Below, in pieces: positions 748 to 61,390 of a DNA stretch of 64,000 nt (positions are counted from its first letter, which is position 1; each line of letters starts with the position of its first letter). Source of the stretch: Lepidodermella squamata (taxonomy: Eukaryota > Animalia > Gastrotricha); the NCBI GenBank assembly GCA_047495785.1, contig JBLDXI010000003.1, positions 3,286,001 to 3,350,000 of the forward strand. The letters run 5' to 3'. The position numbers and the translations under genes were made by a program. The notes below the pieces were generated by a model, which had not been told where the DNA came from, did not search any database, and saw only the letters and a list, made by a program, of their open reading frames with translations.

Positions 748-1251
748 ATGCGTGCTTTCCTCGCCATTGCTGCTGTCGTCCTGCTCGGACTTGGTAACAA
801 ACTTTCAACCTTTTGCCGATAACCTGAAATTCATTTCTGCATTGTTTCAGCTTACTCTGAGGCCAAGGTCTGGAATGTTGAATCGAAAGAAATGCACCGC
901 CACTACGAGAAGAAGGTGAGCGCCTCGGCGAGCCGATCCTTCGAGAACAAGAGGGCTTTCCGCAAGGGACGTGCCTTCCCGATGAAGAAGCGCCACGGCA
1001 AGAAGATGAACAAGCGCCGCGGATCCTTCTCCAAGTCGGTCTCCAAGTCTGTTTCCTACTCGCGGTCCGCCTCGTTCTCCGGCAACCGCTTCGGCAAGAA
1101 CAAGCGATTCGGTGGTCGCAAGTTCGGCAAGCACGGCAAGAACTTCGGCTACGGCCGCAAGGGCGGCAAGTTCGGCCACGGCAAGTTCGGCGGTCGCAAG
1201 GCCAACAAGGGCTCTTACTCCTTCAGCAAGTCCGTCAGCGTCTCCAACTAA
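748..1251 (+). CDS. Family A secreted cationic Lys/Arg/Gly/Ser/Phe-rich protein, copy A1 (148 aa; exons 748-793, 851-1251)
   Basis: Exon 1 encodes hydrophobic signal MRAFLAIAAVVLLGL. A phase-1 GT..AG intron (794-850) joins in frame to ORF 892-1251. AATAAA at 1303. Two near-identical paralogs in the window. Confidence 0.88.
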
Positions 1252-2562
1252 ATTATGATCACAAGAACTTTCCACAATTGATGAATTACCATTGTCATCA
1301 GAAATAAATAACTATTTTAAACTCCTAACCATATCGAGATTCTTGAAATTCATTTACGCTGCGGTTGCTAGCCTTTCACGGACCTTACTGTTGGCGAAGG
1401 ACGTCGTATCAATGACAACAAGAACTTTACACCACTGATGAATACTCATCAGAAATCAGTGAAAATACGAGCTACGCCTATTTGAATTAATTGGACAAAT
1501 AATATTCTCAAGGTTTCGAGATTTTCGAGACGCAGCCCGTGCATTTTTTTAACCTAATCATAAAAGATGTTTATTATTGTTGGCGCAAAGTTGACACAAT
1601 CGAATTTTGTATTTTCGCGGGCCCCATTGATAAAGCCAGGCATCATTTCACTTGGCTAGACTTTTAAAATGATAGCTAATATCTACACCAAGTATCTCGA
1701 TCACACGGCGTTATCAGGCATAGAATTACAGGCATTTCGATAGCGTCGTTGAATAACTCTGATTCTACCCAGTGGCCGGAGAAGTAGTTGGCTTGCTTAT
1801 GAGGTAATCCTTTTTAAAATGTTACTGACATAAATTCATCATTCGACATTTTGTATAGGAACCATAATCGGCTCTTTTTTATTCATCTTTGCTCATGAAT
1901 CAGTAGTCCTTGCCGAGAATTACACGCGATCCCAAATTGTCCTTTCAATTGAAGCCGTGATCCATCTTAGGTGAATAATTTATTATGAAAAAGTCCGAAG
2001 AACGTCTGCAAATGTAACGCGTGATATGAGCTTCAAAACAGCCATGCCACCTACGCCGTTCAAAATTCAAGATTTACCTTTGAAATTTGGGTAGAAAAGA
2101 TTTTGCTTGTTTTCCTTTGTCCTAATTCGAGAAAAAAATTATAAAATAAACTATGATAAACGACGGATCAGATAGAATAAAATAGGTTTTTGCCGGGTGC
2201 CTATATTATCGTGAAAATGAAAAAATGAAAAGGCTCAAAAATTCGAAACGATATTTAAAAAGGGCAAAAATACAGGTTAGGACGATTTACCATTTCGGAC
2301 AAAAAATTAAAAAAAAATAAACCACAGACGAAAAACAACAAATGACACGGTCAGTTTCGAACCACAATCACGCGATTTGTATGAAGTTGACATGGAAAAT
2401 AATAAAAATAAGCAAGTCGCACGCGCGACCAGTCGCCCTCATACGCAACAGGTATGCGGATAGCAGGCAAACAAGGCTTTAAAAGCTGGTCTCAAAATCG
2501 GAAATGTATCATTCCAATCCGTTGCCTCTTCTCTATTTCATTTCTCTCCCTGAACTATCAAG

Positions 2563-3397
2563 ATGCGTTTAACCCTCGTCGCAGCTGCTGCCGCTCTGTT
2601 CTGCATCGGTACAAGTTTATTTTTGTTATGACTGGTTTCAAAAGTAATTTTCGTCGTCCATAGTTGCCGTTTCGGCGAACGACGCGTCCGCCTCTGTGAA
2701 CAAGAAGGAGGCCTCCGCTTCGGCTGGCGTCGACAAGGCTCGTCATGGCGATCTGATCGGCCGCAAACACGGTCGCGGTTTCGGCTTCCATGGCCGCCGT
2801 CGTGGCAACTACGCTTCTGCCTCGGTTAACAAGAACTCTGCTTCCGCTTCAGCTGGCAATGGCGGCCGTCGTGGTGGTCGCTTCTTCGGCCACAAGGGTC
2901 GTCGTGGTGGCAACTTCGCCTCGGCTTCCGTCAACAAGAACTCCGCCTCCGCCTCGGCTGGCTCCAACAAGGGCCGCAAGGGATTCGGCCGTCGCCACCA
3001 CGCTGGTCGCTACTTCGGCCACGGTCGCCGCCATGGAAGAAACTTTGCTTCCGCCTCGGTTAACAAACGCTCCGCTTCGGCCGCTGCCGGCAACTTCCGC
3101 GGCCGCCGTGGTCATGGCAACTTCTTCGACCGTCGTCACGGTGGTCGTCGCGGTGGCAACTTCGCCTCGGCTTCTGTCAACAAGAACTCTGCCTCCGCCT
3201 CGGCTGGTAACTTCGGCAAGCGCGGTGGATTCAAGCACGGCCGTCGCGGATTCCACGGCAAGGGAAAAGGCAAGGGCAAGCACGGTCGCCGCTTCGGTCA
3301 TCATGGTCGTCGTGGTTCCCGCTCTTCCCGTTCCTCCCGCTCATCGGCCTCATCCCGCTCGTCTCGCTCGTCCTTCAAGGGTCGTCGCCACCATTGA
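2563..3397 (+). CDS. Family B secreted Arg/Gly/His-rich protein with repeated ASASVNKNSASASAG blocks, copy B1 (259 aa; exons 2563-2608, 2664-3397)
   Basis: Signal exon MRLTLVAAAAALFCI, phase-1 intron 2609-2663, in frame with ORF 2696-3397. Three paralogs share the structure. Confidence 0.88.
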
Positions 3398-3571
3398 ATA
3401 ATTATATACGAGACATGAACCTGTGAGAGAGAAAATGATTGTGAAAGTTCATTTTTTCTGACTTCATGTATATTTATTTTTCAATCGTGACAGTCGTCGA
3501 AAGATCTATAATCGCAAAATCTTAAAATCCCTGTTTACCTATTTTTTTTATTTAGAATTATTAATCTCAAA

Positions 3572-4807
3572 ATGCGTGTCTACCTCGCTCTCGCTGTGAT
3601 TATCCTGCTTGCCGCTACCGGTAATTTCATGCCATCTCATCTTTTAAGCATTGTTAGTTTTGATATTTTCAATGTAGTCTCTGCCGGCGGTAAGGGCAAA
3701 GGTGCCAAGAAAGGTGGCAACAAAAAGGAAGCTTCGTTCTCTGCCTCGGTTGACCAACGCGACACCTACGACCGCAAGTCCGCCTCTGCTGAGCAGGAAT
3801 CCGCTGCCGTCGACTACGCCTCGGCCGATGCTTCCCACAACAAGAAGACCAGCGACAAGCGCAAGCTGATCAAGACCCGATCGGCCAGCCGCGAACGCGC
3901 CTCGGCCAGCTACGAATCTGCCGGCAAGCGCGATTCCGCCTACGACCAGAAGAAATCGAAGGCTGGCAGCAAGCGCCACGGCCGCGTTGTCCGCAAGAGC
4001 GACTCGGCTGCCTCCGCCAAGCACGACAACGCCTACGCCGACTCTGGCGCCGCCGCCGCTGCCCAGAAGCACAAGCGCAACAAGAAGCACGGCCGTGCCG
4101 ACCACAAGCGCAAGGCTGCTTTCCAGAAGGACCAGGCCCGCGACAAGGCCGGCGAGGTTATCGAGTTCAAGAAGAAGACCTTCACCGACAAGGGCCACAA
4201 CAAGGTCAACAAGTTCAGCTTCGAGTCCGGCTCGCAAGAGTTCGCCAAGGCCGACTCTGATGGTGCTGCGACCACTGCCACCCGCAAAAAGACCGCCAAG
4301 AAGGCCCAAGGCAAGAAGTCCCGCAAGGCCCACTCTGCCGACTACGCCTCCCGCGACTCGAAGGCCTCTGCTGCCGCTGCCTCGAAGAAGGCGAAGCGCA
4401 ACAAGGCCCACAAACGCCGCGCCTCGGCTTCCGTTGCTCGCGCTTCTCACAACGCCCGCGACTACAAGACCAGCAACAAGAAGACCTCCGTCTCCGACTC
4501 TGCTCACACCCGCAAGGCTGGAGCCAAGTATGGCCGCAAACGCGCCTCCGCCTCGGCTGAGCGTGCCACCCACGATTTCGCTGCATCTGTCTCTGGCAGC
4601 TACCAAGAACAAAAGAGCGCCAGCGCCAAGAAGGCCAGCCACAGCGCTGCTAAGGGCAAGAAGGCTTCCAAGAAGGGTGGCAAGAAGGGCGGTAAAAAGG
4701 AAGGAAAGAAGTCCGGCAAGAAAGAAGGCAAAAAGGGCGGAAAGAAGACCGAAAAGAAGGGCGGCTACAACAAGGCGTCTTCAGCCGGTCATAGCTACAC
4801 CTACTAA
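3572..4807 (+). CDS. Family C secreted Lys/Ala/Ser-rich protein, copy C1 (~392 aa; exons 3572-3620, 3678-4807)
   Basis: Signal MRVYLALAVIILLAAT. A 57-nt GT..AG intron (3621-3677) is hidden inside the ORF, at the same position as in paralogs. Conserved SASVDQRDTYDRKSASAE, KKGG repeats, C-terminal YTY, downstream AATAAA. Confidence 0.88.
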   Translation: MRVYLALAVIILLAATGNFMPSHLLSIVSFDIFNVVSAGGKGKGAKKGGNKKEASFSASVDQRDTYDRKSASAEQESAAVDYASADASHNKKTSDKRKLIKTRSASRERASASYESAGKRDSAYDQKKSKAGSKRHGRVVRKSDSAASAKHDNAYADSGAAAAAQKHKRNKKHGRADHKRKAAFQKDQARDKAGEVIEFKKKTFTDKGHNKVNKFSFESGSQEFAKADSDGAATTATRKKTAKKAQGKKSRKAHSADYASRDSKASAAAASKKAKRNKAHKRRASASVARASHNARDYKTSNKKTSVSDSAHTRKAGAKYGRKRASASAERATHDFAASVSGSYQEQKSASAKKASHSAAKGKKASKKGGKKGGKKEGKKSGKKEGKKGGKKTEKKGGYNKASSAGHSYTY

Positions 4808-5371
4808 GCGAATATCGCCAAATTATTTTTGATTGCGATTTTGACGATCTACAAACATATTTGTGATTGTGATTTCTCAATTAACGAAATGAAATAAATC
4901 AAGAGATTAGTACTCATGGTATCTTTTGTTCGGGTTCACCCAAAGAAAGGAAGTCATCATTTCTTGCTACAGAATGTTCAAAATTTGCGTAATGAACACC
5001 GGGTATCATGAAGTTGCCATGAAGTTAACTAGTGACTAGTGTGCTAAAAAGTGCATACACTGGACTCATGGCTAGTTCGTAAATTAATATGAGGATGAAG
5101 GAAAGTAAAAACTCCGACTTCATGTTATTATTGATCGAGTTTCATTTCGGGTTTCAGAAATAGCGATATTCTGGCCAGCGACATCTACTATAATTCGCTC
5201 AGCATTTCAAATGCGTATGCTGGATGACAGAGGCGAAGTATTCCTCAATTATTCCAATTAAGGCCCGGAGCCATAAAAGCAGCGAAAATGCCTTTCAAAA
5301 TCATCAGCCATCTCTCGCTTCGATTTTCAATTAACAGTTTTCCTTCAACCACTTGGTTTGTTTAACAAACA

Positions 5372-5871
5372 ATGCGTGCCTCCCTCGCCATTGCAGTTGT
5401 CGTCCTGCTCGGCCTTGGTATAACCTATTTATCAATTTTGCCGATAACCTGAAATTCACTATTGTTTCAGCTTACTCTGAGGCCAAGGTGTGGAATGTTG
5501 AATCGAAAGAAATGCACCGCCACTACGAGAAGAAGGTGAGCGCCTCGGCGAGCCGCTCCTTCGAGAACATGAAGGCTTTCCGCAAGGGACGTGCCTTCCC
5601 GATGAAGAAGCGCCACGGCAAGAAGATGAACAAGCGCCGCGGATCCTTCTCCAAGTCGGTCTCCAAGTCTGTTTCCTACTCGCGGTCCGCTTCGTTCTCC
5701 GGCAACCGCATTGGCAAGAACAAGCGATTCGGTGGTCGCAAGTTCGGCAAGCACGGCAAGAACTTCGGCTACGGCCGCAAGGGCGGCAAGTTCGGCCACG
5801 GCAAGTTCGGCGGCCGCAAGGCCAACAAGGGCTCGTACTCCTTCAGCAAGTCCGTCAGCGTCTCCAACTAA
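5372..5871 (+). CDS. Family A copy A2 (exons 5372-5417, 5471-5871)
   Basis: Same exon structure as A1; exon 2 almost identical to A1. Confidence 0.87.
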
Positions 5872-5984
5872 ACTAAAACTCAAAGTGCTAAATTATGATT
5901 ATGAATCAATCGTGAATTGTATTCGCTTTTCATGAATAAAATCGCGAAAGTTCAATGCGCAATCCTCGTTTTGGTTAATGTCGG

Positions 5985-6262
5985 TCAAAGTCGGTCTCCA
6001 CGTCTGTTTCCTACTCGAGGTCCGCCTCGTACTCGGGTGTTCGTCATGGCAAGCGCAACAACCGATTCGGTGCTCGCAAATACGGCAGGAACCACGGCAA
6101 GAAGGGCGGCAAGGGGGAAATAACTTTGGCAACAACTACGGCCACAATTTCGGCAACAAGTACCGCCATAATTTCTCCAACAAATTGGGCCACAACTTCG
6201 GCGGTCACAAGGCCAACAAGGGCTCGTACTCCGTCAGCAAGTCGGTCAGCGCCTCTAACTAA
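5985..6262 (+). pseudogene. Degenerate 3' fragment of a family A-like gene
   Basis: Begins with a match to aagtcggtctcc..tctgtttcctactcg and ends GGHKANKGSYSVSKSVSASN*. Frame-disrupted, with no signal exon. Confidence 0.7.
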
Positions 6263-6546
6263 ACAATTTGGCGAATGAAAATAATTGTGAAATTGGAAAA
6301 TATTTTTATGAATGAATTTCTGAAAATAAATTATGCAGATAATAATATTTATTTCTCGCCGAGAAATAAAAATCAGTAAAATATGGATAAATTAAACTCA
6401 CTAGCTTGATAGGTTTCAATAAGAAAATGGTCATAAATTTTCGATTTCACCTGTAAACAAATCATCGAAGGTTGGAAAAGTTAGATATTGAGTCAGCGAA
6501 TATAGCTTAATGTAGTTATGATGCATTTTGAACATCTTCGGTTTAC

Positions 6547-6999
6547 TCAAGTCGAAGGCTCAGGATTAGAGAAACCGGGTGCGATTTCGTTCATCTGATC
6601 CTGGGTCAGAATTTTCGAAGCCGTTATCTCTTGGAAATAGCTTTGTATCGCATGTTCAACGGCTCCTTTTCGGCTGGCCCAGCCGCGAGACTCGGTAGTA
6701 TGACCCGGCCACAGCTTCGGGCAGGTGAACTGACCGTCCCAGACCCATTGAAAGGTTCTAATCCTTCCCTTGTAATTTGCCGTGCAGTCATAGGATCCAA
6801 TCTTGTATGACTGTCCGTCGGACCACTGGTGCAGGTTATACACAGCAGTTCCTAATCCGATCCCACATTGGATCCAGTTTTGTTGAATACACGCAGAAAG
6901 GTCGACCTTGACCGAACCAATTTGGGCCGAACCAGCTTGCGCCGAACCAACCGCAGCGCAAATGGATAGAACACTGGCAATCGCGAGGATAGAATGCAT
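6547..6999 (-). CDS. Anti-lipopolysaccharide factor (ALF)-like secreted antimicrobial protein (150 aa, single exon)
   Basis: Signal peptide. C-x20-C loop CTANYKGRIRTFQWVWDGQFTC followed by PKLW, then SRKGAVEHAIQSYF..KILTQ, matching the ALF layout of LPS-binding hairpin plus C-terminal helices. Confidence 0.75.
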   Translation of the reverse strand: MHSILAIASVLSICAAVGSAQAGSAQIGSVKVDLSACIQQNWIQCGIGLGTAVYNLHQWSDGQSYKIGSYDCTANYKGRIRTFQWVWDGQFTCPKLWPGHTTESRGWASRKGAVEHAIQSYFQEITASKILTQDQMNEIAPGFSNPEPST

Positions 7000-7741
7000 C
7001 GTCACGTAAAAAAATGAGTTGAAAGTGAAATTTCGACCAACAACGCCTGGATTTAAGTATAGTTTACATGAGTTTACATATAGGCTGAAGTAAGCATCAA
7101 CAGCATCATAGCCTCCGCAGTAATCACCACACGCTGTCAGGTGTATCTTACCCTGTATAGCAGTAGGGAGAGTTATAAATTGTGATTCATATTAAACAAC
7201 AATTTTTTGCCTCAACAAGCTTCCGCATTGACGACTTTCATCGGATAAAAATGAATTATGAAAATTATGAAAAAATCAACGAGATGAAATTTTAATGTCC
7301 TGATTGGAAATCCTATACCTAAAATAAGCTAACCTTACCTACTCGCAATTTTCAGAAATTTTAATTGCGATAAATTCAATGTTACTTATGAGAAGAAGTC
7401 ATCAAGATCCACGGCTGATGATCGACTCCCGAAATACCCTGCGAAATATCGGTGCGAATTTTTGAATTTGTGACCTCGGTTAACATGGAGATTTCTGTTT
7501 TTCCATTGTCGTGTAATGGGCTTGGAAATGGGAGCCTTGAAAAAATAATTGATGCGAATTGGGCTGATCGCATGCAAACCTTATTTTTCCTAATTGGAGC
7601 AATTAGAGCCATATTACTAGCGCAATAAGAGCAGTGATGTATATAAAAGCGGCGATTTTAGTTTAAACATCATCAGCCATTCATCCAAGCGATTTTCAAT
7701 AAATCAAAAATATTTTCCGAGTCTCACTCCCCTCTACAATA

Positions 7742-8243
7742 ATGCGCGCTTTCCTCGCTGTTGCTGTTGTCGTCCTGCTCGGACTTGGTAATATAGCTTC
7801 CGAATCGATTTCGCCATTATTCCATTATTTCCATTATTTTAGCTTACTCCGAGGCCAAGGTCTGGAATGTTGAATCGAAAGAAATGCATCGCCACTACGA
7901 GAAGAAGGTGAGCGCCTCGGCGAGCCGCTCCTTCGAGAACATGAAGGCTTTCCGCAAGGGACGTGCCTTCCCGATGAAGAAGCGCCACGGCAAGAAGATG
8001 AACAAGCGCCGCGGATCCTTCTCCAAGTCGGTCTCCAAGTCTGTTTCCTACTCGCGGTCCGCCTCGTTCTCCGGCAACCGCTTCGGCAAGAACAAGCGAT
8101 TCGGTGGTCGCAAGTTCGGCAAGCACGGCAAGAACTTCGGCTACGGCCGCAAGGGTGGCAAATTCGGCCACGGCAAGTTCGGCGGGCGCAAGGCCAACAA
8201 GGGCTCGTATTCCTTCAGCAAGTCCGTCAGCGTCTCCAACTAA
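7742..8243 (+). CDS. Family A copy A3 (exons 7742-7787, 7843-8243)
   Basis: Same structure as A1/A2; TATA at 7640; AATAAA downstream. Confidence 0.88.
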
Positions 8244-10992: not shown

Positions 10993-11130
10993 CAATATCG
11001 TTAGCGTCGTTGAAAGACTCGGATTCAAGTTTAAGCTTATTTATTTGGGCGACAAGTGAAAACATGAATGACTTCATAATTGTCACCTAGAATCCAGACT
11101 CATTTCGCTTAAAATATCACCTAGGCTATT

Positions 11131-14195: not shown

Positions 14196-14806
14196 CTACC
14201 ACTCAGATTCAAGATAAACATCGATGATGAAAGAGTGAACTGCAATGCCAGCTAGAAGACACAAGCCCAAAACGATGAAATCAAAAATTCTGACGAGACC
14301 GCCGTTTTTGACGAAAAAAGCGGGCAAGCCGGGATAACCAAGCTTGTCATCTATCTGACGCCAGAGTCTTTCGTAACAGCAAGCCACAAACTGGTAAACA
14401 GTGCAGCAACTAGCCAACCAAAACATCGAAAATACGTAATCGACTAGGAGAATTCGCTGGGAGGTTTTGGCGACGTTGCTAGAGACCGTCGATTGCGCGA
14501 CGCCCATCGCCAGCAAAACAGTCATTGAGAAGGCGGGACGGTCAGGCTCAGTTGGCGGGATGGCGAATGAGGCAATTTCAACGATATACAACACAGCGCT
14601 TGGTATCAATAGGTTATAAATGAAATACGACGGATTGCGAACCATAGAGGCTACGTAAAATACAGCGCTAGATTTCGTTCCTTTGTAGCTGATAGTCGAG
14701 ATGTTGTAACCGTGCCCGACGAAATTCCATCTGTCCTCGTCGTCGTTGCCCTGCAGAGCGAAAATAGGATCGCTAAACGTCATGAATTCCTCCCCGTGAT
14801 GAGAAG
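14196..14806 (-). pseudogene. 5'-truncated duplicate of the Cys-loop channel gene (end of ECD plus M1-M4 only)
   Basis: Highly similar to the C-terminal ~195 aa of ORF 19070-20281. Similarity stops at ~14806, so the Cys-loop is absent. Confidence 0.75.
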
Positions 14807-17260: not shown

Positions 17261-18330
<1,070 letters not shown>

Positions 18331-19069: not shown

Positions 19070-22000
19070 CTAGGCAGAATCAAGGTAAACCTTGATGATG
19101 AAAGAGTGAACTATAAGGCCAGCGAGGAGACACAAGCTCAAAATGATGAGATCGAAAATTCTGATGAGACCGCCGTTTCTGACAACAACAGCAGGCAAGC
19201 CGGGATTACCTAGCTTGTCATCTATCTCACGCCATAATCTTTCGTAGCAGCAAGCCACAAGCTGATAAACAGTGCAGCAACTAGCCAGCCAGAACATCGA
19301 AAATACGTAGTCGACTAGGAGAATTCGCTGGGAGGTTTTGGCGACGTTGCTAGAGACTGTCGATTGCGCGACGCCCATCGCAAGCAGAACAGCCATTGAA
19401 AACGCGGGGCGGTCAGGGTCAGTTGTCGGGATGGCGAATGAGGCTATTTCAACGATATACAACACAGCGCTTGGAATTATTAGGTTGTAAACGAAATACG
19501 ACGGGTTTCGAACAATTGAGACTACGTAAAATACAGCGCTAGATTTCGTTCCTTTGTAGCTGATAGTCGAGATGTTGTAACCGTGCCCGACGAAATTCCA
19601 TCTGTCCTGATCGTCGTTGTCCTGCAGAGCGAAAATTGGATCGCTAAACGTCATGTATTTCACCCCGTAATTGAGAGAAAAAACCAATGCACATGTTTGC
19701 TTGTCGAATGGGTAGTTGTTAAGTTCCATGCTACAGGAAGCTGTGAACTTTCCCTCTTTCAGCCAGAAAAATTGGACCGTTCGATTTGGTGATTGATCAG
19801 ACTTTGAAGTGACAGCGATTAGGTCTTCGCCGAACTCGTCAGAGTATTGCATGTAGACACTGCCATCACCACCATTGACAAATCGGAACGAAGGCGTCCA
19901 TATTTCGGAGGATTTGGCTACGTACAACTGCTCGTAGGGCCGTTCTGTGAAAATGTCCTTACTATCAGCCGAGCAGGTATCGACTGTCCACTTAAGTAGG
20001 ACATTGCCAGATACAGAAAACGTTTCCTGGACCACATCAACGTCGAGTAGTTTTTGTAAGCCAAACGCAGGTCGAATGACGAGAGGAGACGAGTCTGAAG
20101 TCGGTGGAACAGCTCTTAAAGGAATAAAGTCTTTGCACTCGTCGGCCAACTGCTTAGCTGTTATGTTTGCGAACGGCAGCCCTGTTTCGAAGAGCACAGT
20201 CAATAGTTGGTCGAAAATTCGTTTCGCTGAGCCGCCATAGTCATCAACCGTCTTGGCGAAAGCTGCCACATCTTGAAACAATCATTCAATTAATATAAAT
20301 TATGAAGAGACGATGAACTCTCACCAAGTTTATCAGTGCTGAAAAGCATGACATCTTTCTGTCCAATCTTTGCAGGCTCTTCGACGGTCGAAGTAGAGAC
20401 AGTGAAGGCAGTGGAGGCAGTTGAATCCTGCAAATGATATGGCTGAAAATGGGATTTTATTGTGGAATTGGTGATTTACTTTCTCTAGTGCAAGAGTTGA
20501 GCTTATAGTAGGGGCAAGTCGAGATAATATAAGTGTGGAGGTGATTGTCTTTGGCGATGGCGTTATGCTTGCTGACGATGATGGACTGGAACTCGAGCCT
20601 CGGGTTGTTGTTATTGCAGTAGAAGTTGTGCTTGCTGATACCGTAGAAGTTGAAAGTGAAGTAGAGCCCGTAGTTGTTGTTGTAGCGTTTGATGGCATGG
20701 CGCAATCGTAGAAACTTACGGAGCGTACTTCGGTGGTTAGTGGGTTTGATACATTATCACGGCCTCGGTTGCTTGCAGTAATTCCGAGATAGTAATTGCC
20801 GGCTCCAATGAAGCTCTTCAGTGAAGCGCTCATATTTATATTTCTCAAAAAGTTCACACAATATGTGTTGTCGAAATTGCAAGCGTTTATCGACAACGAT
20901 TGGTTCGTAATACGCACTTGCCAAGTCGATCTGCCCATGATGTATGAACTGAGAACAAGTTGGCTCATAGAACGCGGCGAGCACCAATCGAGCGGGTTGG
21001 CACCGGTGCAACCTTCGTACCAGTATTTGCTTGAATTTGGAGAAGTGTAGATTGCTCCCATTATACCATGGCGTAGGTAAGGTTGGAAAAATAGGGTTAG
21101 GCCTAAAATACACGAGAATAATTTTTGAAAAAGAATGCTGGCTATACCTGTGCGCTGATCCATGGCGACGCCGAAGTCGTATTTTATTGAAGAGTTGTAA
21201 TAGCTAGGATGAGTTCCGCCGGGCGGCCGCACTATTCCATTCTGATTAGTTACGGCAAGCTGGAAGCCATATGGCCAAAAAGACAATGCATTTCCAACGT
21301 AATTCGTACAGTTTCCTTGCAGATCCATGCTGAATGCGACGTATATGTCCGTGCCTGCCGTCAGTGCCTATAACTAAAATTATTTAACTGCTGTGTAATC
21401 CTTGAATATTTACGGTTTGCGCCCATAAGGCGGCATTTTCACCAGCTACAGAAGAAAGAAGCCGAACGTTGCCCGGAGTCACTCCAGTGCTGTTCAAATT
21501 GAACGGAGGATAGTAGTCCCATCGCGACAGATCTGCTGGCGAGGTGTATGACCACTCTTGGCGAAATGTTCCACTCGGACAGGCAAGCTCCGAAGGACTG
21601 ACAGGCGAAGGCACAGGTACTGTTCCACAATCCCATGTATCGACCTTGAATATGTCCAAGTTGACGTAGCTCCCTATAGGATGTGCGGCGATTACTCCCA
21701 GCGACATTTGCGCTGATGCAAACGAGGTCTGAAGCGACTCACCCAAGTCAATGTTCGACATAGTTGTCATACAGTTTGTCGAATTAAATATACAGACGTC
21801 AACCGTGAAATAGCGCTGTTGAACGCGCAGTTTCAAGGTCGCTTTTGTTTTCAGGTACGTATCAATAAACGATTGAGACGTGCTGGAGCAAAAACTGGCT
21901 TGTGTGCTTGTGGGCTTGCAGTTATCAATCCACTTTGTGGCGTTTGGCTCCTGTGTAATAATATTGGCCCTGATATATTTGGCGCTGCTCACAGTGTCCA

Positions 22001-51081: not shown

Positions 51082-52449
51082 ATGACAGGGAAATCTAGCG
51101 AAACTAAATGGTTATTTGCCACATTTTTCACCATATTACTAACCGGTTTCACAGCGCTAACGATCTTTGGTTCTCAGAAATCCTGGCAGGCCAATACATG
51201 GCTCCTGAGCAATTCACCGCCGAAAGAATTGAAAGATAAGTTGGAAAACGAGTCGAGACCATTCTGGATCGAAAGCGATAGATTCGTCGTGAATCGGCTG
51301 TGTGATTTTGACCTAGTTACAACGTGCAATTTCACGGAGAAATCGAAACCTCCAGATGCGAAACCGCTGAGGCGTGACGAACTTCACCACCTGCAACGCC
51401 TTCGCAATTCAACTATTTTGATACTGGCTTTCAATCGAGTTCATCACTACGAAGTCGCCCCGCTAGTTAACGCAATTTTCGGCAGAATTTTTGCCGACGT
51501 TTACTTCTGCCTGCCAACGGCAATTAAATCTGAATTTTCGAGGGCTATTCGAGATTTTTATCCAAATTCGACCCGGGAGTTCTCGAGATTTTTCGAAGAT
51601 CGACAGCTGAATCACGTGAATCAAGTCCCAGTTGTACAAGGAGTTGGAGAGACGATTTACAGCTGCTTAAACTCTGCCGTTAAATCGTCGAAATTGCCAA
51701 ATATCAGCGGCGTGTTTTTCGCTCATGACGACGTCCTATTCAGCTATTGGAAGGCGATTTATGACCCAGTTCAACTTGACCTAGATAATAGCTATTCAAC
51801 ATTAGAGATTGACCGAGGTTATTACTACGACGTCGATGTTATCAAGGCTTGTTCTGGCCCTGGCAATTGCACGACACCGTTTTCTTGGAAGCATTTGTTT
51901 CAATACAAGGCCTCAATGAGAAATTTTTATGACGTAAGCAAACTTAATAATAATTAATTATTCTTGAACTATATTTTTTTCCAGGAATTTATTGAACTCT
52001 CAAATAAATCTTCGATTTTTCGTCATGCTCGTAAGAATCTGGAATTGAAGTCAGGCGGAACTCGTCGCATGTCTCATTGCCCGGCGGATTTTTTCTATAT
52101 TTCGCAAACTGATCTACCGACTACGCTAGCCATGTTCGAGATATTGGCTCGGCATAATGTCTTTCAAGAGATTGCCCTTGGCACGACCTTTGCCAGTTTT
52201 GATCCAGGCCGAGCCAGAACGCTGGATAGGCGGCGAATTTTAATGCGAAATTGGAAGAAACGGCATTTAACGCAACGAATTGATTTCAATCAAATAATTG
52301 CGTTGCATCCTTTCAAAATGTCGAAACTGGCCGAATTCGTGAAAAATTCGACTGATTTGTCGAAACGGTTGAAGCAAGAGCGGTCTGAACTATGCGTTTA
52401 TTGTAAATTATACGAATTCACCAAGATGGTTTCTCTAATAAAAGTGTGA
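51082..52449 (+). CDS. STELLO/DUF288-like putative glycosyltransferase, copy 2 (exons 51082-51933, 51985-52449)
   Basis: Inverted paralog of 38978-40348 with the same intron. Confidence 0.65.
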
Positions 52450-53311
52450 AAGTGAAAGATGAGACATTAATGTTCCATTATTTTCATTGCCTGATTTGAG
52501 CGTCTCCACTCAAACCAGATGAAATATTCCTTGAATCAGATTTGGATGTACTTTAGAACGTCGGATACTGTATCTGTTCACAGCTTTAATAACTCGACAA
52601 AAATGTGAAGCGAATATTGGGACATGAGTGCAATCTTAAAGCTAGCTCTATGGCAACAGCCTTCGTATTGCTCTGATTGTTTATTTCATCAACATATTTC
52701 CTTCGCGCCAAGATCACGTCATTTGAATTTGCTAGGTGTCTGACTTATCCTCGCTGTTTAGTCGTTGGAACCGCCAGAAGTGTTCCCAAATGTCGCCCTA
52801 AATTTGGCGGATTTTTGTTGTTTTTTGAATTTTCAAACTTTCAATTTTGAATTTTAATTAGCTCGGCAAAGGTTTTAGGAATCAGCTGCTAGGGTTTTGT
52901 AAAAATTCTCCAGCAAACTCTTACTCATATGGATGATTGCAGCTCGAAATAGCTCGTGGTTGAAGGTTAACATGTCATTTGAAAAAGTCGAAATTATTTA
53001 TAAATGATTAGTTATCAATTTATTAAATTTCATAAAATAAATACATCATTTGCGTTGTATTTTTGGTACAGCTGGCGAGCTGGATGTTTAGCTTTGAAAT
53101 GAGGGCGTAGATTTTGCTGGTCATTTAACCAGCCCAGTAGTTGCTCTTTCACTGTACGAAAACAACAAACATTCAATATATTAACCCAGGATTTTATTTC
53201 ATCGAATCCTACAAGCATAAATAGATCTCGTTATTCTCAAGCAGAGTGAATTTAATTCAAATACAGTTTATTAGTTCGAGCCGAGATGATGACTGGAGAA
53301 TGCCAGGACAC

Positions 53312-56300
53312 TCAGTAGGTGTTGTCGCTATCTCCATTCTTCTTGCCGCCCTTCTTGCCACCCTTCTTGGAGACCTTCTTGCCATGGTAGTCGCTGTTGC
53401 TGCTCTTGGAGCTGGCGCTCTTTTCCTTGTAGCTGTCAGAGGCTGAGGACTTCTTGCCCTTTTTGCCGCCCTTCTTCACGGCCTTCTTGCCCTTGGGAGC
53501 ACTGTCCTTCTTGGCGCTGGCACTCTTCTCTTCTTGGGAGCTGGCGGAGACGGAGCCACGGAAGTCGTGGGTGGCACGCTCAGCCGATGCATTAGCTATC
53601 CTGAACTATCCTGATGTACCTATCCTTGAAAACTTGATCTTTCGATTCTTGCAACTGTCCGTTGAAACTTATGGCGAGTCGTTTGTTGTAACAAAGCTTC
53701 ACAACCTTGTTCATTATCCGCAGCAAATGCGTGAATACGGACCTGCGCGATTCTACTCGTCTCTTGGCTTCGAGCGAGGTCTCTGTAAAATTGAACCAAA
53801 AAATTACCATAATCCTGTTTCTCAAATTTTTAACTGTGCAAAATATCAATCGAAAAGATTCTTGAATTCGACTGATTCGCTGAAATTGATTGATGGAGGA
53901 AAAGAGAAAAATCTAACCGAATATTTGAGCTACCTTGACGTTTCTGCTTTGAGTCTACCTGAAAGAGCTGTCGTGCGTAATTCGATTCGCTATAAAGGAG
54001 CTTTTTTTGTAATCGGCTCGGCTATTACTACTTCGAAGCCGAGTGTCGGCTGGTTTAATAGTCCCAATCGACCTACTTTTCACCAAATTGAGTGCATTTA
54101 CTCTATTGATGATGACGTTTTTTTCGTTGTTGTTGAACTGACCATCGAGCGCTTCTTCCGCCGCTACTTCTCTTATCATGTAACCGGTGACATGAAAAAA
54201 ATTTCTATAGTTTCATGGAAGGAATTACATGTAAAAAGATCATTTCCAATTATTCCTCACTCCAACGATCACATGCACCTCATTGTTGACTGTTTGCCTC
54301 ACAACCCTCAAGCAATGTAAATATAACTGAAAAATCGCGACATTTGAGCTTTGCTAGGCTGCTCTGAAGCCTGATTTTGTTTTATATTCTCGTCGCAATT
54401 GCGATAAATGGACAATAAAATGTGATTACTGGCATTTTGGGCGCGTTTTAATTATTGTAGGCGTGGTTCGGGCGAGGTTGGAATGGTCGCTACAAAATGA
54501 GCAGGGTAGCAACCGACTTTCTACATACTTGCTACAAGGCAACTTGCTCTTTAATGACCTCCAATTTCTTTAGCACGAATAAACTCATTAAATAGCAAGT
54601 ATCGCCAAGAGCATTAAAACTTGCTACCTAGCATGCTACAAAATGAGTTGTTTTTTACACTGTAAAAAACAACTCATTTTAGCTATCAACGGAGTGAAGC
54701 AACACGCGAAAATTAAATAAGAAATTGTCTTACCTTTTGAGGGGAAACGGCTACAACAACCGTTACAGCAGCAGCAGCAGCGACGGAAGCAGCTCGATTT
54801 TTAAGGAACGCCACAACGACTTCGCAAGCCTTTCGCAGGCCGAGCGAATTCGGAAACATTTCCCGAATGTCATCTTCCGTCAATGCAAGCATAACGGCCT
54901 CGTACAACTGTTCCCCTATAATAGAAAATATTCGATAAAAATAATTCAATAAAAATTCAGATCAAAATCAGAAAAATTATCGCAATATTTCAATAAATAT
55001 AAAAATAATTCAATTAAAATTCAGATCAAAATCAGAAAAATTATCGCAATATTTCAATAAAAATAAAAATAATACAATTTGAATTTAGAGCAAAATCAGA
55101 AAAATGGGAAGCCGATTTTCCAAGTATTATAATATAAATTTGATTGAATGAAAAAATTTCGAAAAATCATAATTTTCACTACAATAATAAAATAAGGGAG
55201 CGAACCTGCAAATTTAGCCGACAGGCCATCGACGTGATCTTGGTTTGTAATGCCGGCTTCAGTAACGAGCTTGATTGCCTCCGTCAAATAATCCATCTTA
55301 ACAAGAATTCTAAGGAAAAAATGTTTGAAAAATTGTGTAAAAAAAGTTGAGCGAGAACAGGGGCGAAGAAGTGGATTGGGCCAGGTAATTTTTTCGCGAG
55401 TTATGGTACCGAGGAGTACGAGCCGTGGGAAAATTCGAAAAAATGGCTAATTTGGCTAGAATAGCCGGGGTTGACTAGGCCTGGATTGGGCCTACAAAAT
55501 TAGGCGGAAAGGTATAAAACTGGAATAGAATGAAAACAGCACTGACTTGAACGAAAAATTTAGAGGCGGTTTTATACCGGTTGGGTAGCGGTTGTAAAAC
55601 ATGGAGGCGACGAGCGGGAGATGTTATAGGCGCTAAAAACTTTGCGTGACGTGCAACGCAGTCAACCACGCAAAGGGAGGCGATGGTGCGTGCCTAGATC
55701 CAGGGTGAGACCCGAGGCGGTGACAACGTCGCGCTGCAGCTGTCAGGTGTTGACGCGGCAAGTTTTGAACGACGGCGTCAACTACGGTTTCAAAGGCTGT
55801 GATCACGCAAGGGCGAATAATAAACAACAACTAGTGTAGCGACAAGCCACAATGCCGCAAAAAATGGGCCGAGTATGCGCAATGAGCCCATAAATCAGCC
55901 TAGCTCAGAAATAACCTGATGATGAACAAAATTAACGCGAAAAAAGTCTTGCGTTTAAGACGAAAGGCGCAAACAACAAAAAAGCCCGCTTTATGCGGGT
56001 CCCCAAAATTAACTGAATTGAAAAGTAAGGATGAATCAAAAATTTCAGCCGATTATTCAAATTCTAACCTAGAACACCCGTTACTTGGAGCCTTATGGTA
56101 AACAAATCAAGCAGAAAAGTTGAAATTAACCAAATTCGCTGCGAGAGATACCAAGCCGTTTTTCCGTGTTCGCCGTGAAATGCCGTTAAATGCCGTTTTA
56201 AACGGCCGTAAAACTCATGAAAAGCGCAATTCAGGCAATATACATTATCAGCGCAATGAAAATCTCACGATTTTCGCCGGCGTTGCAGTCTGTAACTTTT

Positions 56301-57404
56301 TTATTGCCGCATAAGTGAAAAATCTAGTAACGCGTTTCTCGTAGTAAAAAAATCTATGAACGCAGCCATCATTAAACGATCTCACAAAAAACGGGTGTTT
56401 CGATGCCAGCCGCGCCGGTCGCCGGCATGACGATACCTGCCCGGTAAAATATAACTCAGCCACGCTAATCAGCCAACGACTGTAATAAAATAACCCTAAT
56501 ATCGTGAAAACCTGACGCTGCTTTTCAAAGATGGTAATTTATCTATGAAAAAGCGACGGCAATGGCTGAAGGCTGAATGGTGATAATTAACCTAGAAACG
56601 AAGCGCGGGTGAAGCGCCAGGCGGTTATTGACTGAACTGAGGCGCCTTCGGTTTGAACGTCAACTTGTGAAACGACAGAAAATTCATGTGCAAACGACGA
56701 GCAAAAAGCGACAAGTGCGCGCAGCGCTCAAATTGTCGCCCGCGCGCACACACTCACGAGTGACCTATTACGCATTATTAAGTTAACAATAAAAATTACT
56801 TCATCATGAGCGACGTGAGTTATCTAATGAGGTACACGCTCAATGGTACGCGCAATTTATTAGCACCTTTGCGCGCTATTCAGGTATCGCGTGAATTGAA
56901 AAGTGAGGTGACGAAGCAAGCAGGTTTTTACAGTGAGAGTCGGCGTAGGCGTTGTCGTGTTCGGCGGAGGCAGACTTGGCACTGTCACGGTGTTTGCGGC
57001 CGTGGCGCTTGCTGCCGGCCTTGGACTTCTTCTGGTCGTAGGCGGAATCGCGCTTACCGGCAGATTCGTAGCTGGCCGATGCGCGTTCGCGGCTGGCCGA
57101 TCGGTTCTTGATCAGTTTGCGCTTGTCGCTGGTCTTCTTGTTGTGCGAAGCGTCGGCCGAGGCGTAGTCGACGGCAGCGGATTCAGATTCAGCAGAGGCG
57201 GATTTGCGGTCGTAGGTGTCGCGTTCAGAGACCGAGGCAGAGAAAGAGGCTTGGCGACCTCCCTTGCCTTTGCGGCCGTAGCCGCCAGCTGAGCTGAGAG
57301 CTTAGAGAACAAAAAAGCACTAACATAGCCAAGAACTACGATAAATTCTGAAACTTACCGATGCAGCCGAAAGCAATGATTGCCAAAACTAACACAGTTC
57401 GCAT
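53312..57404 (-). pseudogene. Family C copy C3, split by a transposon and missing ~500 bp of central coding sequence (pieces 57404-57359, 57300-56936, ~53596-53312)
   Basis: The 5' part ends at ..HDNAYADS. The 3' part resumes at NASAERATHDF and ends GDSDNTY*. The intervening segment present in C4 is absent. Confidence 0.85.
53597..56935. mobile_element. Rearranged CMC (CACTA/EnSpm-like) DNA transposon remnant
   Basis: CACTGTAAAAA termini at 56935 (minus) and 54658. Transposase C-terminal fragment 53597-54320 (TKLHNLVHYPQQMREYGPARFYSSLGFER). Opposite-strand exons ~55296-54730 include a SAM-like LALTEDDIREMFPNSLGLRK. Confidence 0.72.
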
Positions 57405-57550
57405 TTTGAATAAGTGTAAGTATCTAATAAGGCAGATAGGAAAGCTTTCATCATCGATTTTGCTTATTCGTCGCGACCCTCTGGAAAAATAATTATAATG
57501 TTTGGACGTAAAATCCACACACATCTCATCAAGTTCTTTCACGTTCAAGC

Positions 57551-58178
57551 TTAATGCCAGTACCAGCCATTGCGACGGCCGTAGAAGTCGCCGGACGAGT
57601 ACGAGCCACTGTAGAAACCGCGGCGACCATGACGACCATAACCATAGCGACCGCGGCCGTAGAATCCACGACGACCGAAGCGACCACCGCGACGGCGGGA
57701 GGACGAGCCGGAAGAGGAGGAGCTGGAGGACGACGAACTAGAGCCACGGCGGCCGATGAAGTGGCCACGGCGACCACGGTTGTCACCAGCGCTCGCTGAT
57801 GCGGAGTTCTTGTTGACGGAGGCCGAGGCGTAGTTGCCACCGCGACGACGACCGAAGAAGCCGCGACGGCCACGGTTGTTGCCGGCAGCGGCCGAGGCGG
57901 AGCGGCGGTTGACCGAGGCCGAGGCGAAGTTGCCGCGACGACCCTTGCGGCCGAAGAAGTGGCCACCACGACGGTTGTCACCAGCCGAGGCGGAGGCCGA
58001 TTTCTTGTTCACCGAGGCGGAAGCCTTGTTGCCACCTTCACGTCCACGCTTGGCAAGATTCGCCGTGGTGGCGACTGGAAGAAATCAGAAGCAAAATTCA
58101 AAAGCTGTTGGAGCCAGCTGTGCAAAAATTACCGATGCAGAAGAGAGCAACTACGGCAGCGACAAGAATGACACGCAT
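57551..58178 (-). CDS. Family B copy B3 (exons 58178-58133, 58074-57551)
   Basis: Signal exon, 58-nt intron, repeats, GWYWH end; TATAAAAA at 58259-58252. Confidence 0.88.
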
Positions 58179-59139
58179 TTTGGAATAGTTTTTGAATATA
58201 CTCAAGAGATGGAGAAAACAGTTCACTGATGTAAAAGGCCAATTTTTCAGGTTTTTATAACCGATCAAGACATGCCCCAGTTCTGCAACAAGCGAGGAAG
58301 ATTCGCGCTCACGCATGTCCGAACGACGATCGCGAGCGTGTTTACGCTACAAGTCATCACATCGCTTCCTCGCCATTGTAGCAATGACCCAGTTGTTTCA
58401 GACCACAATATGCAACTTCCAGCTCGTGCCGCCGGTTGCCACGCCCAATCACGACCATCTACAGCGGTGCGAAAAAAATTAGTTCAGGTCGTTTTATTCA
58501 TTCTGAGCAATTTTGAACTATTTTACGCTGCTTTTAAGTTGCTTTTATCTGTAATGTGGCAAATGATTTCATTCATATATATTCCTGTGCCGCTTTGCGT
58601 TTATTAATCTTTCAAATTATAGGGGCAATGTGTTTTCAGGGGGTTTGATGGTCATTGCGCCTTTATAGCTAGCTCTAAGAATAAAGAAGTTGAAAGATTA
58701 ATACCTAGTTGAATTTTGATATTCGACTGGCGCCTAGACGTATATCGTTAACATCCAGGCGTATTCGGTGATATTGATATTCGGTGAACTTCAGTCGTGA
58801 GCGGACATATTCACTGGCGCCTAGGCGTGTTCAAGTTGGACCTTGGACCTTGGAACTACTAAATTAATTAATAGGTATTTAACTTAAGTTTAAAAAAGCT
58901 GTATTTAAAGGCCTAACCAAAGGCTTCTAATCCGGTACAGCTGAAAAGCTAGTCTTTTATAGCAAGGGATAACCAAATTACTTGCATCTTTGAACTAAAA
59001 ACCGTTAATAAACACAAATAGAGATTATTATAACTCAGCATTTTTATTTCGTCGAATATCGATTCCTAAAAACATCAACAGATCCTGTTATTCTCGTCAG
59101 AGTAAATATCATTTAATCAGTTGTTAATTATCTCGGTTA

Positions 59140-60552
59140 TTAGTAGGTGTAGGTGCTATCTCCATGGGCTGCTTCTTTACCATAGCCGTGGTTGTAGCCG
59201 CCCTTCTTGCCACCCTTCTTCTCGGTCTTCTTGCCATGGTAGCCGTTGCTGCTGGCGCTCTTCTTTCCATAGCCGTAAGAGCCTGAGGACTTCTTGCCCT
59301 TCTTGCCGCCCTTCTTGGCAGCCTTCTTGCCATGGTAGCCGTTGCTGCTGTCCTTCTTGGCGCTGCTGGCGCTCTTTTCCTTGTAGCTGTAAGCAACTGA
59401 GGTCTTCTTGGCCTTCTTGCCGCCCTTCTTTCCTTCCTTCTTGGCAGCCTTCTTCGGGGCGCTGTCCTTCTTGGCACTGGCGCTCTTTTCCTGGTAGCTG
59501 CCAGAGAAACCTGCATGGAAGTCGTGGGTGGCACGCTCAGCCGAGGCATTGGCGCGTTTGCGGCCGTACTTGGCTCCAGCTTTGCGGGCGTGGGCAGAGT
59601 CGGAGACGGCGGTCTTCTTGCTGCCGGCCTTGTAGTCGCTGGCTTTGTGGGCAGCACGGGTGGCGGAGGCCGAGGCGCGGCGGTGGTGGGCCTTGTTGCG
59701 CTTAGCATTCTTCGAGGCAGCGGCAGCAGCGGCAGTCGAGTCGCGGGAGGCGTAGTCAGCAGAGTGGGCCTTGCGGGACTTCTTGCCATGGGCCTTCTTG
59801 GTGGTCTTTTTGCGGCTGGCAGTGGTGGCGGCGCCGTCAGAGTCGTAGGCACCGAAGTTCTTGGCACCGGATTCGTAGCTGAACTTGTTGATCTTGTTGG
59901 TGCCCTTGTCGGCGAAGTTCTTCTTCTTGAACTCGATCTCTTCTCCTTGCTTGTCATGAGCCTGGTCCTTGGTGAAGCCGCTCTTGCGCTTGTGGTCGGC
60001 GCGGCCGTGCTTCTTGTTGCGGCTGTGGTGCTGGGCAGCGGCGGCGGCACCAGAGTCGGCGTATGCCTGATCATGATTGGCGAAGGCAGCCTTGCCGCTT
60101 TCGCGGTGCTTGCGACCGTGGCGCTTGCTGCCGGCCTTGGACTTCTTCTGGTCGTAGACGGAGTCGCGCTTTCCGGCAGATTCGTAGCTGGCCGAGGCGC
60201 GTTCGCGGTTGGCAGAGCGGTTCTTGATCAGCTTGTGCTTGTCGCTGGTCTTCTTGTTGTGGGAAGCATCGGCCGAGGCGTAGTCGACGGCAGCGGATTC
60301 AGCTTCAGCAGAGGCGGACTTACGGTCGTAGGTGTCGCGTTGGTCGATCGAAGCGGAGTAGGAAGCACGACGACCACCCTTGCCATGACCCTTGCCGTAG
60401 CCACCCTTGTGTCCCTCCTCTTTACCATAGTCGAACGTTGCTGAGCTCAAGGCTAAAAAAAACAAAAGTGATATTTTTGCTGATATAAAGTGGATGAATC
60501 CTATACCGATGCAGCCTAAAGCAATGATAGAAAGAACCAAGAAACTTCGCAT
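59140..60552 (-). CDS. Family C copy C4, intact (~452 aa; exons 60552-60507, 60452-59140)
   Basis: Signal exon, 54-nt in-frame intron, closely similar to the reconstructed C2. Confidence 0.88.
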   Translation of the reverse strand: MRSFLVLSIIALGCIGIGFIHFISAKISLLFFLALSSATFDYGKEEGHKGGYGKGHGKGGRRASYSASIDQRDTYDRKSASAEAESAAVDYASADASHNKKTSDKHKLIKNRSANRERASASYESAGKRDSVYDQKKSKAGSKRHGRKHRESGKAAFANHDQAYADSGAAAAAQHHSRNKKHGRADHKRKSGFTKDQAHDKQGEEIEFKKKNFADKGTNKINKFSYESGAKNFGAYDSDGAATTASRKKTTKKAHGKKSRKAHSADYASRDSTAAAAAASKNAKRNKAHHRRASASATRAAHKASDYKAGSKKTAVSDSAHARKAGAKYGRKRANASAERATHDFHAGFSGSYQEKSASAKKDSAPKKAAKKEGKKGGKKAKKTSVAYSYKEKSASSAKKDSSNGYHGKKAAKKGGKKGKKSSGSYGYGKKSASSNGYHGKKTEKKGGKKGGYNHGYGKEAAHGDSTYTY

Positions 60553-60702
60553 TTTAGATAAATCAAAAGAAAATATTCTAAAATGAAGAACAAAGAAGGC
60601 TTGTTAGACACAAAAATTTGCATTTTCCATCAAATATAGCTGAATAAATATAATCATCTCCGTTACACAATGAACATGTGCGATAGGTTCTTGGGGATGA
60701 GC

Positions 60703-61390
60703 TTAATGCCAGTACCAGCCATTACGACGGCCGTAGAAGTCGCCAGCCGAGGACGAGCTGCTGCCGAAGGCACCACGGCGGCCATGGCGACCGAAACCTT
60801 TGCCAAAGCGACCACGGCCGTGGAATCCACGACGACCGTGACGGCCGTATCCGAAACCGCGACGACCGAAGCGACCACCACGGCGACCATGGAAACCGGG
60901 GCGGCCAGAGAAGGAGCTGGACGAGCGGGAGCCACGGCGACCGATAAAGTGGCCACGGCGACCACGGTTGTCACCAGCATTCGCCGAGGCGGAGTTCTTG
61001 GTGACGGAGGCCGAGGCGTAGTTGCCACCGCGACGGCGACCGAAGAAGCCGCGACGGCCACGGTTGTTGCCGGCAGCAGCCGAGGCGGAGCGGCGGTTGA
61101 CCGAGGCAGAGGCGAAGTTGCCGCGACGACCCTTGCGGCCGATGAAGCCACGACGACGGTTGTCACCAGCCGAGGCGGAGGCCGATTGCTTGTTCACCGA
61201 GGCGGAGGCCGATTGCTTGTTCACCGAGGCGGAAGCTTTGTTGCCAACTTCGCGTCCACGCTTGGCAAGGTTCGCCGAGGTGGCGACTGGAAGAAAGTAA
61301 AAGCAAAATTAAAAAATGAAATTAGTCAGCTGTTCGAAAATTACCGATGCAGAAGAGAGCAACTACAGCTGCGACGAGAATGACACGCAT
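60703..61390 (-). CDS. Family B copy B4 (exons 61390-61345, 61286-60703)
   Basis: Same structure as B3; TATAAAAA at 61471-61464. Confidence 0.88.

Follow-up and report, generated by a model that had tools for sequence, protein, structure and literature searches.

The window analysed here, i.e. the whole stretch of 64,000 nucleotides from the gastrotrich Lepidodermella squamata (contig JBLDXI010000003.1, positions 3,286,001 to 3,350,000), carries eleven genes of three families (three A, four B and four C genes, with models rebuilt from the sequence) whose products most resemble the constituents of a material akin to silk, cement or an egg coat. We give roughly an even chance to the reading that they are lineage-restricted secreted structural or adhesive proteins which assemble via β-forming blocks and cationic coacervating linkers. 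The material itself could serve as an adhesive or cement, as the coat of an egg or cocoon or as some comparable secretion. A bulk extracellular product is suggested by signal peptides, by high expression together with codon optimisation, by the lack of an enzyme-like fold, by silk-like β blocks and by cationic, aromatic and glycine-rich linkers. In addition a strict pairing of B and C genes was found, which is a new observation that goes beyond the original prediction made for this DNA from its letters.

For the detection of the genes long stop-free stretches of the window were translated and kept if they were rich in serine, alanine, glycine, arginine and lysine and free of cysteine. This composition filter yielded twelve pieces from the whole window. 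All eleven genes start with ATGCG (Met-Arg). Their first exon comprises 46 nt (49 nt in C1) and encodes a hydrophobic leader; it is followed by a phase-1 intron of 53-60 nt with GT..AG ends and then by a single cysteine-free exon. The splice sites are predicted from the sequence, the first exon being too short for contig pieces to align. The window as a whole is eukaryotic; genes are densely spaced, intergenic DNA has about 42% GC, introns are short and genes with a single or few exons are common. A scan of both strands for an ATG with a hydrophobic exon of 43-52 nt, an intron of 45-94 nt and an open reading frame (ORF) of at least 60 aa returned the eleven A, B and C genes and one spurious match only. 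This means that within the window the two-exon architecture is specific to these families. The scan agrees with the gene number and architecture of the original prediction, and the C-termini given there (GWYWH in B2, B3 and B4, i.e. in three of the four B proteins, TY in C and SVSVSN in A) as well as the motifs that it quoted are all found in the rebuilt models. Two points of that earlier account have to be corrected. The signal peptides of B and of most C copies contain one cysteine, so that only the mature parts are cysteine-free, and besides the intact copies (A1-A3, B1-B4, C1 and C4) there are two broken ones, C2 being split by a transposon and C3 having lost its middle, and a twelfth, frameshifted A-like copy.

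The precursors are 148 aa long in each A protein, 189-259 aa in B and 392 and 452 aa in the intact C1 and C4, respectively. Genes A1 (exon 1 at 748-793, intron of 57 nt, exon 2 at 851-1251; TATA box about 100 nt upstream), A2 (exon 1 at 5372-5417, intron of 53 nt, exon 2 at 5471-5871) and A3 (exon 1 at 7742-7787, intron of 55 nt, exon 2 at 7843-8243) are all located on the forward strand. The same strand carries B1 (exon 1 at 2563-2608, intron of 55 nt, exon 2 at 2664-3397), a protein of 259 aa with five ASASVNK-type blocks and the C-terminus RRHH, C1 (exon 1 at 3572-3620, intron of 57 nt, exon 2 at 3678-4807) and B2 (exon 1 at 33254-33299, intron of 60 nt, exon 2 at 33360-33928; 204 aa). On the reverse strand are found B3 (exon 1 at 58178-58133, intron of 58 nt, exon 2 at 58074-57551; 189 aa), C4 (exon 1 at 60552-60507, intron of 54 nt, exon 2 at 60452-59140) and B4 (exon 1 at 61390-61345, intron of 58 nt, exon 2 at 61286-60703; 209 aa).

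The A, B and C genes are under purifying selection. In the proposed frames the A copies show a pairwise ratio of non-synonymous to synonymous substitution rates (dN/dS) of 0.03-0.13, compared with 0.33-0.35 among the B and 0.17-0.38 among the C copies. Lysine is encoded by AAG in 83-96% of cases and glycine by GGT or GGC. For arginine, B and C use nearly exclusively CGT or CGC, and CGC predominates in A. The GC content at third codon positions amounts to 0.66-0.87 compared with 0.46-0.54 in most neighbour genes, among which the spectrin-like and cathepsin genes reach up to 0.68. This codon bias is the pattern expected for very highly expressed genes, family A included.

Two public runs, designated here X1 and X2, contain this DNA, both as contigs only, so that depth always means summed contig depth. 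Run X1 dates from 2015 and its kind was guessed as RNA. A total of 5,438 of its contig fragments were aligned over 3.9 kb. Depth is about 50,000 on B1 and about 190,000 on C1, the highest value, compared with 0 in the intergenic stretch 4889-5412 and about 1 upstream of B1. The spacer between B1 and C1 has a depth of 43, unlike the true intergenic stretch, and A2 shows only 8-65. Exon-restricted coverage at such a scale speaks for X1 being RNA and for B and C, or very close paralogues of them, ranking among the most abundant X1 transcripts. Thus, with the kind of X1 being a guess, B and C appear to be co-expressed at a very high level. Run X2 is DNA-like (intergenic depth 45, longest contig 130 kb). 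Its summed depth on the coding parts of A, B and C is 30-100 times the flanking single-copy level (2400-6300). There may be many more members of these families elsewhere in the X2 genome, summed contig depth being a poor measure of copy number.

Every C gene is immediately preceded by a B gene in the same orientation, with 174, 144, 146 and 150 nt between the stop codon of B and the ATG of C in C1-C4, respectively, and the window thus contains four head-to-tail B>C units. TATAAAA-type boxes are found 85-100 nt before the ATG of A and B genes, one of them ahead of B in each unit. The four B-C spacers have in common a T-rich tract ending in AG (TTTTAG, TTTAG or TTAG) at 20-30 nt before the ATG of C, and in the comparison of spacers with upstream regions this element was not present ahead of A or B genes. 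A T-rich tract with AG resembles the situation at the downstream gene of a trans-spliced operon, and we would put the probability of an operon at about one half. As TATA-like AT-rich strings also occur within the B-C spacers, C might have its own promoter. The spliced-leader sequences compared had no match in the window.

All eleven precursors exhibit the classical features of a signal peptide, namely Met-Arg, a hydrophobic core and AYS, VSA, TSA or SSA, after which the cleavage of the leader was placed by eye and hydropathy. The proteins are therefore predicted to be secreted by the classical pathway. Their mature parts are extremely basic with isoelectric points (pI) of 11.6-11.7 in A, 12.0 in B and 10.2-10.4 in C and a net charge of +32 to +66, and they contain no cysteine, at most one proline and very few aliphatic residues. 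Local charge and the content of Ser, Ala and Thr are anticorrelated (r from -0.30 to -0.64), which confirms the blocky design of alternating Ser/Ala blocks and cationic spacers that had been proposed from inspection of the letters.

The three families realise this design in different ways. In A, 20 of the 21 serines are found in three alternating runs, the first being (SX)3S followed by x-E (SASASRSFE), the second (SX)9S and the third, C-terminal one (SX)5S, where X is Val, Lys, Phe, Tyr or Arg and where Gly/Lys/Phe spacers lie between the runs; none of 2,000 shuffles matched this number of serines in alternating runs. Family B shows three to five ASASVNK-x-SASASAG blocks connected by linkers of about 17 residues rich in Gly, Arg and Phe, then a Ser-rich stretch and a tail with RG, YG, FG and HG. 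In C a Glu or Asp two residues behind a Ser usually closes the Ser/Ala blocks, and the pattern SxSx[ED] is enriched (p = 0-0.02). AlphaFold2 was run on B2 with four paralogues as alignment. The resulting model has strands at 14-19/24-29, 45-52/56-64 and 78-85/89-95, i.e. three hairpins located exactly on the Ser/Ala blocks, with a predicted local distance difference test score (pLDDT) of 60-75 in the hairpins and below 50 in the linkers and the tail, which are disordered (mean 50). For C4 long low-confidence helices are predicted, followed by a disordered KKGG/GY tail (mean pLDDT 45). Of the β-prone blocks claimed originally, those of B are thus retained as predicted hairpins between disordered linkers, and the claim does not hold for C, which is predicted to be helical or disordered.

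Comparable designs are known from several underwater materials. In the H-fibroin of caddisflies [(SX)nE]m regions are followed by a Gly-rich spacer (PMC13267644), and phosphoserine β-domains in the silk are bridged by Ca2+ (PMC4929942). A similar alternation of (Ser-X)n(E) β-forming motifs with Gly-rich basic spacers is seen in A with its serines in runs; in C, Glu or Asp comes after (SX)2-3, with the SxSx[ED] enrichment mentioned above, and B has ASASV/SASASA blocks without Glu. In contrast with the caddisfly proteins, A, B and C show no sequence homology to them, comprise only 130-430 aa encoded by two-exon genes of 0.5-1.4 kb instead of genes of more than 20 kb, lack conserved Cys-bearing termini and have no L-fibroin partner seen here. 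The host genome is not insect-like, and phosphoserine, which is established in caddisflies, is putative in A, B and C.

The barnacle cement protein cp19k, which forms β-rich fibres, is built as a block copolymer in which blocks rich in Ser, Thr, Gly and Ala are combined with charged ones (PMC9097139, PMC10410215). It shares with A, B and C the small size, secretion and the alternation of uncharged blocks rich in Ser, Thr, Gly and Ala with charged ones, which is reflected here in the anticorrelation of charge and Ser/Ala/Thr content. The proteins described here are much more basic and rich in Arg, His, Phe and Tyr, and they have regular hairpin-sized repeats. A relationship with cp19k did not emerge from the searches detailed below, which covered 5.8 billion clusters and 1.84 billion representatives derived from public genomes and involved no pairwise comparison with cp19k. 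Sabellariid cement consists of highly expressed polybasic Gly/Lys/His/Tyr proteins that are co-secreted with phosphoserine-rich partners and undergo complex coacervation, in which sulfated polysaccharide and Mg/Ca also condense, and FAM20C kinases have been proposed as modifiers (PMC12621633). In composition the C tail with GY and KK and the B tail with RG and YG resemble Pc/Sa-1, -2, -4 and -5. However, there is no homology, positive and negative charges reside on separate proteins in the tube worms (Pc/Sa-1, -2, -4 and -5 versus Pc/Sa-3) whereas Ser and basic blocks share one chain here, and both 3,4-dihydroxyphenylalanine (DOPA) and phosphoserine are putative in A, B and C. The caddisfly, barnacle and sabellariid designs, the closest ones in print, represent convergent analogues and not relatives of these proteins.

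From these features a possible mode of assembly can be outlined. The B>C unit would supply two partners together, possibly as a trans-spliced dicistron. Protein B would contribute three to five (Ala-Ser)n β-hairpin blocks that could stack into silk-like sheets, joined by linkers rich in Gly, Arg, Phe, His and Tyr, and its RG/YG-rich tail would favour condensation driven by cation-π interactions. Protein C would be a chain rich in Lys, Ala and Ser that tends towards helices, carries (Ser-X)2-3-Glu/Asp cassettes and ends in a KKGG/GY tail, and A a small protein with nearly all of its serines in (Ser-X)n runs separated by Gly/Lys/Phe spacers. Kinases of the FAM20C type in the secretory pathway prefer S-x-E/pS. 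The (SX)nE cassettes of A and C would fit this preference, and the alternating serines upstream could then be primed one after another. With serines numbering 21-55, equal to 0.5-0.9 of the net positive charge of the chains, extensive phosphorylation would roughly neutralise each of them. It may turn them into near-neutral polyampholytes that coacervate and then set, similar to caddisfly silk and sabellariid cement. Alternatively, the polycations could associate with a negatively charged partner, for instance a sulfated or acidic glycan. In its most specific form this proposal regards the B>C unit as a dicistronic, trans-spliced two-component material cassette which delivers B and C and, together with A, gives rise to Ser-phosphorylated, self-neutralising polyampholytes that coacervate and set; we consider this form rather improbable as a whole.

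If such a cassette existed, it would represent an independently evolved and genetically compact underwater silk or cement in a microscopic animal, made from families without relatives. The strict B>C pairing offers a case in which gene arrangement, possibly an operon, might serve an animal to keep two material components at a set ratio. Also the more general reading as a structural material would, if true, add a fresh and very compact example of Ser β blocks combined with cationic, aromatic, Gly-rich linkers, a design at which caddisflies, barnacles and tube worms have each arrived independently. Since the genes are short and their mature products free of Cys, they lend themselves to direct synthesis and expression for work on adhesives, coacervates or fibres. 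If the proteins were immune effectors instead, they would constitute new families of large Cys-free cationic defence proteins, and either way they are among the most expressed and codon-optimised genes of the window with no annotation anywhere.

Several observations weigh against a structural or adhesive material. Confidence in the AlphaFold models, which are based on 4-5 paralogues, is low (mean pLDDT 50 and 45), and C is not predicted to form β structure. Family B has no S-x-E sites, which makes its phosphorylation pure inference. No intron joints over the A, B and C genes were found in the X1 contigs, to which the first exon is too short to align, and dicistronic B-C RNA was not found in the X1 data, which consist of contigs only. 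In X1, the only RNA-like data set, the depth of A is 100-1000 times lower than that of B and C. Moreover, a separate TATA promoter serves A, whereas C is found behind B in every case. It is therefore doubtful that the three components form a co-secreted set as originally suggested. Finally, a gene similar to anti-lipopolysaccharide (anti-LPS) factors is located among the A genes, and Gly-rich cationic proteins are a known class of antimicrobial effectors.

The last two points lead to the strongest rival of a secreted material, especially for A, namely host defence. Here A and perhaps B would be Gly-rich cationic antimicrobials that act on microbial envelopes, either intact or processed, and the locus a fast-evolving tandem immune cluster; overall we regard this as unlikely. 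Gly-rich cationic antimicrobials of invertebrates have a signal peptide, are encoded by short two-exon tandem genes, contain Gly/Arg/His/Tyr/Phe repeats and are lineage-restricted. Signal peptide, two-exon tandem genes, repeats and lineage restriction are common to A, B and C, which also show the very high pI, segments rich in Gly, Arg, Lys, His, Phe and Tyr and the organisation as a multicopy cluster. Between the A-like remnant behind A2 and gene A3 an ORF of 152 aa (6547-7005, reverse strand) with a signal-like N-terminus and a Cys-x20-Cys basic loop matches the Pfam anti-LPS-factor/scygonadin domain (PF11630, E 1.9e-8, 34.8 bits with a cut-off of 25); no PDB chain was matched by its sequence. 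This domain family is known from crustaceans and horseshoe crabs. Moreover, the low basal depth of A in X1 despite its strong codon bias would fit an inducible gene. However, A copies are near-identical (dN/dS 0.03-0.13) and not diversifying, B and C are constitutively enormous in X1, and C with its 370-430 aa is very large and neither amphipathic nor peptide-like. The best conserved features are the uncharged Ser/Ala β blocks, which are unusual for antimicrobial peptides. The original prediction had offered as an alternative that peptides are cut out at the many dibasic sites. R-x-K/R-R sites number 1-3 in the linkers of B, in favour of defence, and 0 in A and C, which have no furin-type sites, and acidic spacers occur in no family. 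Convertase-flanked repeats with spacer propeptides, as in multi-peptide precursors, are thus seen neither in A nor in B or C, and this alternative is not supported for A or C.

The proteins might also act as mere polycationic packers. In secretory granules or in a gel coat they would compact a negatively charged cargo (polyphosphate, acidic partner proteins or a sulfated or acidic mucopolysaccharide) without being the load-bearing material themselves. The lack of hydrophobic cores at a net charge of +32 to +66 as well as KKGG and RG tracts would suit this task, and sabellariid granules combine charged proteins with sulfated polysaccharide (PMC12621633). Two STELLO-like glycosyltransferase genes and a gene for an NAD-dependent sugar epimerase/dehydratase lie in the window, but this neighbourhood may be coincidental, and conserved β-hairpin and (SX)n blocks are unnecessary for simple charge neutralisation. 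On balance such a role seems quite unlikely to us. Still more doubtful is a function as extracellular stress protectants, i.e. abundant hydrophilic disordered proteins in a LEA- or SAHS-like role which shield surfaces during drying or freezing. The extreme expression in X1 and the Ala/Lys/Ser/Asp-rich C proteins with their predicted low-confidence helices and disorder are in line with it, but neither LEA nor another Pfam family was detected even at E<=1 and the strong positive charge and the silk-like β blocks are atypical of known protectants. That these are not genes at all and that GC-rich low-complexity DNA is fortuitously open in several frames, as could be suggested by further long ORFs that this DNA contains on its other strand and in alternative frames, is hardly credible, being contradicted by dN/dS well below 1 in the stated frames, a frame-specific codon bias and a signal exon plus intron kept in eleven copies and nowhere else in the window, with TATA boxes and the restriction of X1 depth to exons speaking against it as well.

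Concerning relatives, the original prediction had recognised no named family, and this is in accordance with all searches performed. Pfam at E<=1 with A1, B1, B2, C1 and C4 gave no usable family (for A only a chance-level hit to Spem1), and in particular the LEA family profile did not match B or C at this threshold. When B2 and C4 were searched by word index in 5.8 billion clusters, no match was returned, although low-complexity relatives may be hidden by the composition filter of HMMER, and an exhaustive HMMER profile search with the C family in 1.84 billion representatives returned 0 matches. Neither the ESM Atlas with B2 and A1 (no usable match) nor a PDB profile search with B (no match) pointed to a homologue, and in JGI metagenome scans with C and B patterns were matched with no relative confirmed. 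Family A was searched in Pfam and the Atlas only, and HMMER discounts biased composition. In the text of 8.4 million papers none of four characteristic peptide motifs occurred, and literature on rotifer adhesives, eggshell or glycine-rich proteins contained nothing relevant. Look-ups of the exact A, B and C products delivered no record. As the proteins of this genome are apparently outside the collections, close relatives in an under-sampled lineage could be missed. With this scope, A, B and C represent three lineage-restricted families without detectable relatives. Homology between the families was considered as well, but the 23-46% identity in tblastn, obtained with no composition correction, was rejected as compositional.

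The recent history of the cluster is visible in its broken copies. The 5' part of C2 (34073-34372, forward strand) consists of the signal exon at 34073-34118, an intron of 55 nt and some 66 initial codons of exon 2, which begins at about 34174. After codon ~86 the gene is interrupted by an element of 2,915 bp (34373-37287, reverse strand). This transposon is bounded by terminal inverted repeats of 69 nt with 99% complementarity, and it encodes a transposase of the P-element/THAP9 type with the Pfam TNP-like RNaseH_N, GBD and RNaseH_C domains. Behind it the reading frame of C2 continues exactly (37288-38436, forward strand; residues ~68-452 in C4 numbering, 94% identity to C4), so that the insertion is young. 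Both ends of the element abut a GTC trinucleotide instead of showing the 8-bp duplication that is classical for P elements. The 5' part of C3 (56876-57404, reverse strand; signal exon 57404-57359, intron of 58 nt, exon 2 from 57300) comprises about 120 homologous codons, behind which come unrelated sequence and a stop. The last ~95 codons of C3 with the C-terminus NTY are found 3.3 kb away (53312-53596, reverse strand) and about 170 central codons are absent. The 3.3-kb stretch between the two pieces (53454-56870) harbours 64-nt tandem AT-rich repeats at 54935-55126 and an ORF of 288 aa without Pfam match, the first part of which is antisense to the C3 remnant while the rest resembles a transposase tail.

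The additional A-like copy (5925-6259, forward strand) has no signal exon and a frameshift near 6119, its two frames showing 54-58% identity in tblastn, and it is probably a pseudogene in this assembly. Run X2 differs at this copy by an insertion of 1 nt at 6119 and a deletion of 3 nt at 6090, which would change its frame compared with the assembly, so that this copy may be intact in another strain or species. The B>C unit itself was multiplied within a large inverted duplication, in which B2-C2 and two neighbour genes are mirrored by the B3-C3/B4-C4 region. The segments 37288-40198 and 51229-60288 share 92-94% identity over blocks of 1.1-1.2 kb, and C2 together with a gene pair (a STELLO-like glycosyltransferase ORF and an ORF of 161 aa) is mirrored against the C4/C3 region.

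Among the other neighbours of the cluster are a gene for a class-C G-protein-coupled receptor, for which a search at 1e-10 returned no match and the neighbours in the ESM Atlas were uninformative as to taxonomy, and divergent ORFs of Cys-loop channels (19070-22001 and 14196-14783, both on the reverse strand; Neur_chan_LBD, E 5e-13), one of which adjoins Ser/Thr-rich, lectin-like ORFs. The sole Rfam match in the window is a tRNA gene (61967-62038, forward strand; RF00005, 66.8 bits) that is located about 580 nt beyond the start of B4.

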